Positions 6,401 through 9,400 of a stretch of DNA of 64,000 nucleotides are shown here, in pieces (within the stretch, counting starts at the first letter, position 1; each line of letters starts with the position of its first letter). Where the stretch lies: NCBI GenBank assembly GCA_964188305.1, contig OZ076895.1. One strand, given 5' to 3'. Source of the DNA: Podarcis bocagei (taxonomy: Eukaryota). The position numbers and the translations under genes were made by a program. The notes below the pieces were generated by a model. It searched no databases. It had not been told where the DNA came from and worked only from the letters and a program-made list of their open reading frames with translations.

Positions 6401-9400
6401 GGTAAAGGGGCAGATAAGATTTATTGGAAGCATTTCTTGCATGGCTCTAGAAGGAATCACACACGACACGACACCCGGGGTTTCTCAGTCACCTGGTTCT
6501 AGATGAAGAATAGGAAAGTGTTGATAGAAATAGGCTCTCTGAACGTTCTGCATCTCTGCAACAGAGACGTCAAAGAAAAACCCAAGAAAAGAGATAGTAA
6601 CAGTGAGAGTCAAAGCAGATAATCCAGAGTGCAAGATACCTAATGGCACTGGAATAAGCAAAGAAATCCTTAGAGGCAATGTTTGGTTTCATCTCATTAC
6701 ATCCCATATTTGGATGTGGTAAAGTACAAGGAACATCGGTTTGAATGTTATTCTGGGATGCTGCCTGCCCCTGACATTTTGACCCTTTTCCAATCTCTCC
6801 TCAGTTCAGCAACAAGAGGAGAATAGTATTCAGAATAAAGCATACACAAGTTTTGGATCACACTGATCACTGTCATTTTAAGGGAGTGGAAAGCCCCTGT
6901 ATATAAAGTGCTTGAAGATATTGGATAAGCACTCTTTAAGAAAAATATGCAAGAAATATGGTTACATACCATCTTTCCACAGTTCAGAAACAAATTTATC
7001 AGAGGACTGGTGTAGCAGAGTAGCAATGTTGTCATTAAGGGGGTCCATGTTCTTCATCAGCCACTCATCAGCTTTGTAGTCAACCTAGAGAAGAAATTAA
7101 TTCATTAATATTAGCTACAAAAGATTAACCTTGCCTCAGTATTGAGGAAAAAGAGGCAAAACTATGATTGTCCCACTCTTGAAATGGAACATGATTCTAG
7201 AGATACTGTACTAAGTGGTGAAGCTTAATTATAGCTTATTTGTATGATTTAACTCAGAGTAGATCACATAAGTCAATGGGCTTCAAGTCATGACAAACTT
7301 AAGTTACCGATCTCAGTGGGTCTATTCCAGCTATGACTTAGTTGGATACCGCCAATGTGAATTATCCAGAGCACCTCAGAAGTGCTAGTCAACAAATGCT
7401 TGATCTGCCACTGCGAGAAGAACGGAAAGGCTGGATTGGCAACAGTTAATGTGCCTTGCCATTAAATGGAAAGCCGTAGACTTTTATGGGAGCACACTGC
7501 TTCCTTTCCTAATGTGGAACTTGATCACTACATAGCTTTCACTAGCCTAAAACAAACCCTCAAATCAGCAGGATCTAAATTGTCCACAATTCAGTAGCAC
7601 CTCTTTGCTTTTCTTTCTACTACAAATATAAGGGCTTACCTTGCCAGCATAGTGCATAATGCAGAAATCAGCTTTGTCTTTTAGCTGCTTTGGCTTCTGA
7701 AACTTGGGATGAGTGCCTTGCTCCTGCACCACCTTTTCCACAAAGCTTTTATCAGTAGCTTTGGGGAACCAGCATTCTTCATCCAGTAGGGCCAAGATGC
7801 CAGGAGGTCCAGCCTGTGTTAAAAAAAGAAAGCAGGTGGAAATCAGCACTGCTATAAAGATTCATGGTTTTGAACAAGAAAAGCGCACAAAATGAAATCT
7901 ATCAATTGCTCTTAGCAAAGCAGCTTTCCAGACTGGCCATAAGCAGTCTCTAAAACTATCCCATTTCTTGCTCCTTTTATATACCATTTTTCATAATAGG
8001 AATTCTACATTTAAATGAGTTTTTGCAAGTTTATTCAAATTAAATTTATTATCTTTTATTTATAACCTGCCTGCCTTCCACCATGGAACCCAAGGCTGCT
8101 TACATGCTGTTCCCAGGCAGTTTCATACCTAGGGACTAACCATATTCAACTACCTCAGCTGCAGCAAGGTGGTGGCCTCGTATGCTCATAAGACCACACT
8201 TATGTAGATAAATTCAGCTTCTTAGCATAAATAAAGAGGTTTGTGCATAAGGGCCTTAAGCTCACTGCAATAACTGTTCTGTACTACCCAGGACACAATG
8301 CATGAGTCACTCACCGGTTTTTCTATAAGATCAATGCAGGGCTGCAGATCCAGGCCAAAGTCAATGAAGTTCCATTCTATGCCCTCACGCTGGTATTCTT
8401 CTTGCTCCAGGATGAACATGGTGTGATTGAAGAGCTGTTGCAGCTTCTCATTCGTGTAGTTAATGCACAGTTGTTCAAATGAGTTCAGCTAATTCCGGAA
8501 AAATAGAACAATGCAGGTCTAGGTGAATGCTGCCCACCAAATGGTTACCTATTTCTGAACCAACATTCAACTACAGTTTCTCCACTGCCTTATTTACTGA
8601 GATGGAGAATGCATCTTGTTAGGTGCTTAGCAGCACTCATTTGAGCATCAATTCTAAACTTGGAGCAGCAGACATCTGCTCTCCACTTAGCAGCAATCCT
8701 GCATGCCAATTCTTACTTTGCTGAAAGAAAGAGTATTTGACAGCAAACATTATATTAAGGTTATTTATTTTGTTCCAAAATCATTTTTAAACACAGTCAT
8801 TTTGGATTTTTCAGGCATACCAAGACCATAATATTACATCTAACGCTGAAAACTAGGATGGGACCCTGAGTTTGCTCATGTTGGCTGAAGTGTCCCCTGA
8901 GGGGAGTTGCACTCATAATGCCCCCACCAGTAGATGGGGAAAATGAGAATTGCCAATTCCCATCCCATGCACCCCTTTTTCCCCCGGTCTAGAGAGTTGG
9001 GGGACCTCTCGGGTACAATAAGACACAGTGCAGGGAGGGGGGTGATCAGCACAAACCGCCTGTTCCTCTTTCTGCTAGAGGGATGCTCTGCTGGATCTTG
9101 GTCCAGCCCATGGAAGGAGACCTTCCATTTGTGGAACCCTAGTTAAGATCCAAGCCATAATCTTTCAGAAGAGGAGCTTACACTGGACTTTAAGAATGTC
9201 TCTAGCTTCTCTTCAAAAGAATTCTATTTTGTTCCTACTTGCTGCCTGGGGTCACTGAAAAATTATGTGATACGAGTACACTATGGTCCAGTACATCAAA
9301 GGTGGGCTCCCTTGAATTCCTTCCTGGTTGAGCCCTGGGATGAAACTGGAAGGACCACAGTTCAAGTGGAGGTTCTTAGCTGACATCCCTCCTTAAGCAA

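Follow-up and report, generated by a model that had tools for sequence, protein, structure and literature searches.

The MYH9 locus of Podarcis bocagei

The window, by which we mean the whole stretch of 64,000 nucleotides from Podarcis bocagei that was analysed, carries on its minus strand the exons of a non-muscle myosin heavy chain gene, two of which enclose the 63-nt exon described here. The upstream constitutive exon (6970..7084, minus strand) ends with SELWKD plus the single letter G of a split codon and has the donor ATG/GTATGT, and the downstream constitutive exon (4457..4650, minus strand) encodes VDRIVGLDQ...NHEKK and has the donor AAG/GTAATG; we call them exon 15 and exon 16, following the numbering of the mouse paper. 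The translation of exon 16 is identical to residues 616-679 of human Myosin-9 at 62 of 64 positions and scores 126 bits, and the paralogues Myosin-10, Myosin-11 and Myosin-14 score 107, 105 and 78 bits. Since the score to Myosin-9 is higher than that to Myosin-10, the host gene is MYH9.

We also noted other features of the window. The region 54560-55550 (minus strand) is very GC-rich, has stop-free frames of up to 238 codons and resembles a CpG island; it may be the region of the MYH9 promoter and first exon. A GC-rich tandem repeat lies at 47774-48182 (period 109 nt, 3.8 copies, 91% matches), and a compound (CT)n(CA)n microsatellite, which reads as SLSLSL...THTHTH in translation, lies in a MYH9 intron at 13900-14050. 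The loop-1 exon ends at 21813 (minus strand), and a loop-1 mini-exon of the A1/B1/C1 type would fall in the intron or introns that reach to 16205; in mouse, Das et al. (2023, PMC10480317) found no A1 exon.

Between exons 15 and 16 we found, at 6555..6493 on the minus strand, a 63-nt cassette in phase 1 on both sides, which can be read directly from the letters. Its acceptor reads ...gtctctgttgcAG up to the exon border, with the AG at 6557-6556, and its donor reads CCAG/GTGACT, with the GT at 6492-6491 (both on the minus strand). When its split codons are completed with G(6970) and TT(4650-4649), the cassette stays in frame and contains no stop; in human numbering its 21-residue peptide falls after D614 and before V615, on the N-terminal border of loop 2. 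A symmetric phase-1 exon of 63 nt had been proposed at this place in an earlier note on this DNA, and the open, AG/GT-bordered segment bears it out.

An open frame and splice dinucleotides are at chance level here, because 101 open symmetric phase-1 AG..GT cassettes can be counted in the intron that separates exons 15 and 16, and 49 of these are at least 60 nt long. What raises this segment above chance is that homology and conservation single it out.

Relationship to mammalian exon A2 and its paralogues

The 63-nt segment is very probably the orthologue of the described alternative exon A2 of MYH9 (NMHC IIA). Exon A2 has been reported as a 63-nt exon that starts at the second nucleotide of a GAG codon (Das et al. 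2023, PMC10480317) and is located between exons 15 and 16 (Mallick et al. 2026, PMC13158602). In Podarcis bocagei the segment sits at this published site, with SELWKD encoded by the exon before it and VDRI by the exon after it, and has the published borders, being 63 nt long, in frame, bordered by AG and GT and begun at the second nucleotide of a Glu GAG codon. The earlier note's assignment to an NMHC-IIA loop-2 cassette is thereby upheld, since site, length and phase match those of the mammalian exon. Altogether, the likenesses to mammalian A2 comprise the gene, the intron, the length of 63 nt, the GAG start, the GTGACT donor, a branch-point-like motif at -54 and the lack of UGCAUG.

At the protein level, the peptide shares 16 of its 21 residues, including QRAYFY and FPILHLE, with the published mouse A2 insert EMQSTQRAYFYRRFPILHLES, and the mouse differs at five residues, having S, T, R, R and S where the lizard has N4, V5, Q12, H13 and P21. 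By a hand estimate that assumes a match probability of about 0.06 per position, 16 matches out of 21 would arise by chance with a probability of about 1e-13 even over the 101 cassettes. At the nucleotide level, mouse uses the same five codons for QRAYF, and the mouse A2-specific primer has 17 consecutive nucleotides in common with the window. The C-terminal half of the peptide had been taken in the earlier note for a diverged sequence; FPILHLE is, on the contrary, identical in mouse A2, which marks it as an old signature of A2 and not something that changed in lizards.

Furthermore, an NCBI entry, "Myosin-9, partial [Cathartes aura]", which is a genome annotation and not a transcript, has the exon-15 peptide joined directly to the identical 21 residues. 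The exon is thus not a hidden one, as had been supposed, given that A2 is already published and is present in this bird Myosin-9 record. The A2 exon of MYH9 was reportedly described by Li, Lalwani and Mhatre in 2008.

We also considered membership in exon B2 of MYH10 (NMHC IIB), which was rejected because the host gene is MYH9, so that the relation to B2 is one of paralogy. Exon B2 lies at the same site of the motor domain, has the same 63 nt and 21 amino acids, is neuronal and makes the motor nearly inactive when included. The two exons have in common the nucleotide core TTCAGAGAGC..TTTCTAT and the CCAG/gtga donor, as judged qualitatively from a B2 alignment in the 2026 supplement that was machine-read at 61 of 63 letters. 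B2 differs in belonging to a paralogous gene, in a donor reported to be optimal (8.77) and in the middle of its peptide. Exon C2 of MYH14 (NMHC IIC) is likewise alternative and neuronal and lies at the same loop-2 position, but it is reported to be 99 nt long (33 amino acids), has little sequence similarity and has the opposite effect, yielding a constitutively active motor. A2 has been found to resemble B2 more than C2 (Das et al. 2023, PMC10480317), and loop-2 exons have been aligned across ten species, with alligator and chicken in the supplementary lists for B2 and C2 (Mallick et al. 2026, PMC13158602). It is plausible that A2 originated before MYH9 and MYH10 split.

Conservation of the exon and its flanks among sauropsids

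A length-filtered word search with the genomic open reading frame at 6488-6679, which reads across the acceptor, returned three proteins only, the Cathartes aura record and two genomic open reading frames. The genomic matches belong to the JGI metagenome contigs L001 and L002 (3300005287, 3300000035) and to the Logan contig L003 (SRR21676449). These are vertebrate MYH9 genomic DNA inside metagenome or Logan assemblies, and presumably derive from the host. We read all three as sauropsid, and the depth of conservation is gauged from dS and from the Cathartes aura protein record.

The exon is identical at 63 of 63 nucleotides to L001 and to L002, and at 62 of 63 to L003, in which the only change turns N to K. 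As the earlier note had called for, orthologous introns were aligned, and the frame, the splice sites and the donor hexamer turned out to be kept. Exon 16 gives the measure of distance: compared with L001, all 64 amino acids are identical, with no nonsynonymous and 21 synonymous differences, which corresponds to a dS of 0.74, and so L001 comes from a distantly related animal. L001 and L003 resemble each other closely, with about 93-98% identity in the A2 flanks, and both are far from Podarcis bocagei. If synonymous differences arose in A2 as often as in exon 16, the probability of finding none there would be about 7e-4, which implies that the exon is constrained at the nucleotide level.

The conservation extends beyond the exon. 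In a local blastn of the intron, begun at 6969, the exon and its flanks form a conserved island (6330..6638, minus strand) that is 81-82% identical over 319 nt to L001 and L003. Apart from the approach to exon 16, nothing in the 2.3-kb intron can be aligned outside this island of about 310 nt. When the flanks are divided into segments of 33-49 columns, identity is 65-87% out to about 110 nt, and two ungapped segments of the downstream flank are 73-80% identical. In the approach to exon 16, the roughly 130 nt upstream of that exon (4651-4784) align weakly with L001, at roughly 60% by hand count, which is much below the A2 flanks.

A search of sequencing runs with 6470-6580 found 20 runs under 12 organism labels and from 13 studies, two declared as RNA, and in all 20 the seven sampled 31-mers of exon and flanks were unchanged (7/7). 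Because these matches also contain the intron flanks, the runs represent DNA or unspliced RNA, and they speak for intact copies in closer relatives.

These data bear on the possibility that the exon is a relic, an inheritance of the amniote ancestor that is still intact but has dropped out of the mRNA in this lineage. The low inclusion of A2 even in mammals would fit such a history. An exon out of use would decay, however, yet all 63 nucleotides have been kept at a dS of 0.74, conservation also covers both splice sites, the flanks and the donor hexamer, and the unchanged 31-mers recur across the runs and organism labels just described; we therefore regard a relic as very unlikely.

Splicing signals and putative regulatory elements

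The donor of the exon, GTGACT with a C at +5 (6487..6492, minus strand), matches the A2 donor of mouse and human exactly; the published GUGACU was found here as CAG/GTGACT, and its context GTGACTGAGAAACCC does not vary among the three sauropsid sequences compared. In mouse and human, GTGACT has a MaxEnt score of 6.60, against 8.57 for the donor of exon 15 and 8.17 for that of exon 16, and changing +5 from C to G in a minigene raised A2 inclusion about 9-fold (Mallick et al. 2026, PMC13158602). In the window, by contrast, the A2 donor scores 4.27 bits against a median of 4.23 for 16 constitutive MYH9 exons, on a crude position weight matrix. The weak donor proposed in the earlier note thus holds in part: the hexamer is the one that limits inclusion in mouse, and on our crude scale it is about as strong as the median of its neighbours. 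The donor of the Podarcis bocagei exon is suboptimal at +5 rather than clearly weak, and because the matrix ranks it no weaker than its neighbours, the logic of a weak donor is carried over from mouse. Among the constitutive exons, the one ending in ANIET (16140-16142) has an apparent very poor donor, CCT/GTATCC, with a crude score of -5.2, far weaker than that of A2, at a boundary deduced from frame and peptide continuity only.

Upstream of the acceptor we found a zone free of AG with an interrupted pyrimidine tract (6558..6639, minus strand), exactly 82 nt long as the earlier note had counted, with the preceding AG at 6641-6640. It is the longest such zone when compared with the 16 constitutive MYH9 exons (median 33, maximum 56), and zones of at least 82 nt precede 1.2% of the acceptor-like AGs in the window; in L001 and L003 the zone is shorter, roughly 60 nt by eye. 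The pyrimidine tract of A2 is not weak (0.81 Y, constitutive median 0.71). The long zone would fit a branch point some 50 nt upstream, and the sequence CTCTCAC (6603..6609, minus strand, -54..-48) is a candidate for it by its likeness to the mouse motif 'ctctcat', to which it is near-identical and which lies at the same position. In mouse, the branch point at -54 was predicted by HSF, and a minigene with the motif mutated included A2 at a level as low as the wild type (Mallick et al. 2026, PMC13158602).

The earlier note proposed that PTBP probably represses the exon, and we weighed the reading that A2 is held off mainly by PTBP on CU-rich tracts and is released where PTBP1 falls, in neurons and muscle. 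UCUCU or UCUU motifs are present at -39, -37, -32, -21 and -12, the CU tract UCUCUUUUCUU lies within the zone as had been seen, at about -39..-29, and exons with distant branch points typically have an AG-free zone as long as these 82 nt. Near the acceptor, UCUCU and a UGC at -5 are invariant in the three sequences. Among the CU-rich sites of the three sequences, however, conservation is limited to the UCUCU beside the acceptor (-12/-16), and in L001 and L003 the long UCUCUUUUCUU tract gives way to CACUUUCUGUGG. Since the UCUCUUUUCU tract invoked for repression is not conserved in the other two sauropsid sequences, PTBP repression is unsupported. Moreover, partial deletions of the flanking introns in a mouse minigene brought no rise in A2 inclusion, whereas a stronger donor did, as did RbFox1-3 (RbFox3 the most), MBNL1 and NOVA1 (Mallick et al. 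2026, PMC13158602), and no direct test of PTBP was found in the literature. We consider PTBP as the main repressor improbable.

Downstream of the exon, the UG-rich stretch reported in the earlier note is present as GUGUCGUGUCGUGUGUG at +19..+35 (6458..6474, minus strand) and is conserved in L001 and L002, with one change in L003. A second intronic block, CUAGAGCCAUGCAAGAAAUGCUUCC at +43..+67 (6426..6450, minus strand), is identical at 24 or 25 of its 25 positions across three species and carries YCAY and YGCY motifs, from which we infer a possible link to NOVA1 and MBNL1. No (U)GCAUG occurs in the exon or within 170 nt downstream in the window, L001 or L003, and the exon therefore does not resemble a canonical RbFox-activated exon. 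Mouse A2 likewise lacks UGCAUG, and a non-canonical RbFox site at GUGACU has been proposed for it (Mallick et al. 2026, PMC13158602). Taken together, CTCTCAC, the missing (U)GCAUG and the conserved YGCY and YCAY motifs fit the published mouse regulation.

We also weighed whether the island could be primarily a non-coding element, such as an enhancer or a structured or non-coding RNA, that has an open frame by accident. The frozen synonymous sites and the roughly 110 nt of intron conserved on each side could be read in this way. Yet the Rfam scan of 6200-6800 gave no family match, and the fold of 6440-6610 had no excess structure (z = +0.53), its predicted 8-bp hairpin over the acceptor being indistinguishable from chance. 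At the same time, the differences from mouse are confined to five codons and leave frame, length and splice sites intact, and mRNA and protein containing A2 have been demonstrated in mouse and human (Das et al. 2023, PMC10480317). An essentially non-coding island is in our judgement extremely unlikely, the least probable of the alternatives weighed here.

Discussion

What is known of A2 comes from mammals. In mouse and human the exon is included in brain and skeletal muscle, in mouse in about 15% and 5% of transcripts, and the motor of the resulting NM IIA2 is nearly inactive (Das et al. 2023, PMC10480317). The neural or muscle specificity that the earlier note predicted thus agrees with the mammalian pattern. 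With mouse and human constructs, a Vmax of 0.017 s-1 has been published for NM IIA2, against 0.38 s-1, and no motility; NM IIA2 nonetheless keeps its binding to actin and slows IIA0, with which it co-assembles.

If the lizard exon works in the same way, A2 would be skipped in most tissues, as a donor with C at +5 would pair poorly with U1, and RbFox, aided by MBNL1 and NOVA1, would bring about its inclusion in a minority of transcripts, of the order of 15% in brain and 5% in skeletal muscle in the mammalian work. The 21 extra residues of loop 2 would then, as in the mammalian protein, cut the actin-activated ATPase about 20-fold and abolish motility, and NM IIA2 would act as a brake in filaments mixed with the standard isoform.

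The exon A2, its effect on the motor and the control of its splicing are already known from mammals, and because all three are published, our finding adds only one more orthologue. The increment is that A2 is letter-perfect between two sauropsids whose exon 16 has a dS of 0.74, together with knowledge of which flanking blocks are conserved; two of these, at 6458-6474 and 6426-6450, were not dissected by the mouse minigene work. The letter-perfect exon, the invariant GUGACU and the conserved UG-rich block argue that NM IIA2, although of low abundance and dead as a motor, is under strong selection. Moreover, the frozen synonymous sites and the conserved flanks suggest that A2 carries splicing-regulatory information besides its coding information.

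We hypothesise that A2, with about 110 nt of intron to either side, is a near-ultraconserved element, sauropsid-wide and perhaps amniote-wide, with its synonymous sites frozen (0 changes at this dS), and from sequence comparison we hold the chances for and against this to be even. If true, a second code at the RNA level would set the low, tissue-specific inclusion of A2, for example through sites for RbFox, MBNL or NOVA, or through UG-binding factors acting on the conserved GUGUCGUGUCGUGUGUG. The amniotes split over 300 million years ago, and the "brake" isoform NM IIA2 would then have been kept for >300 million years despite its low abundance.
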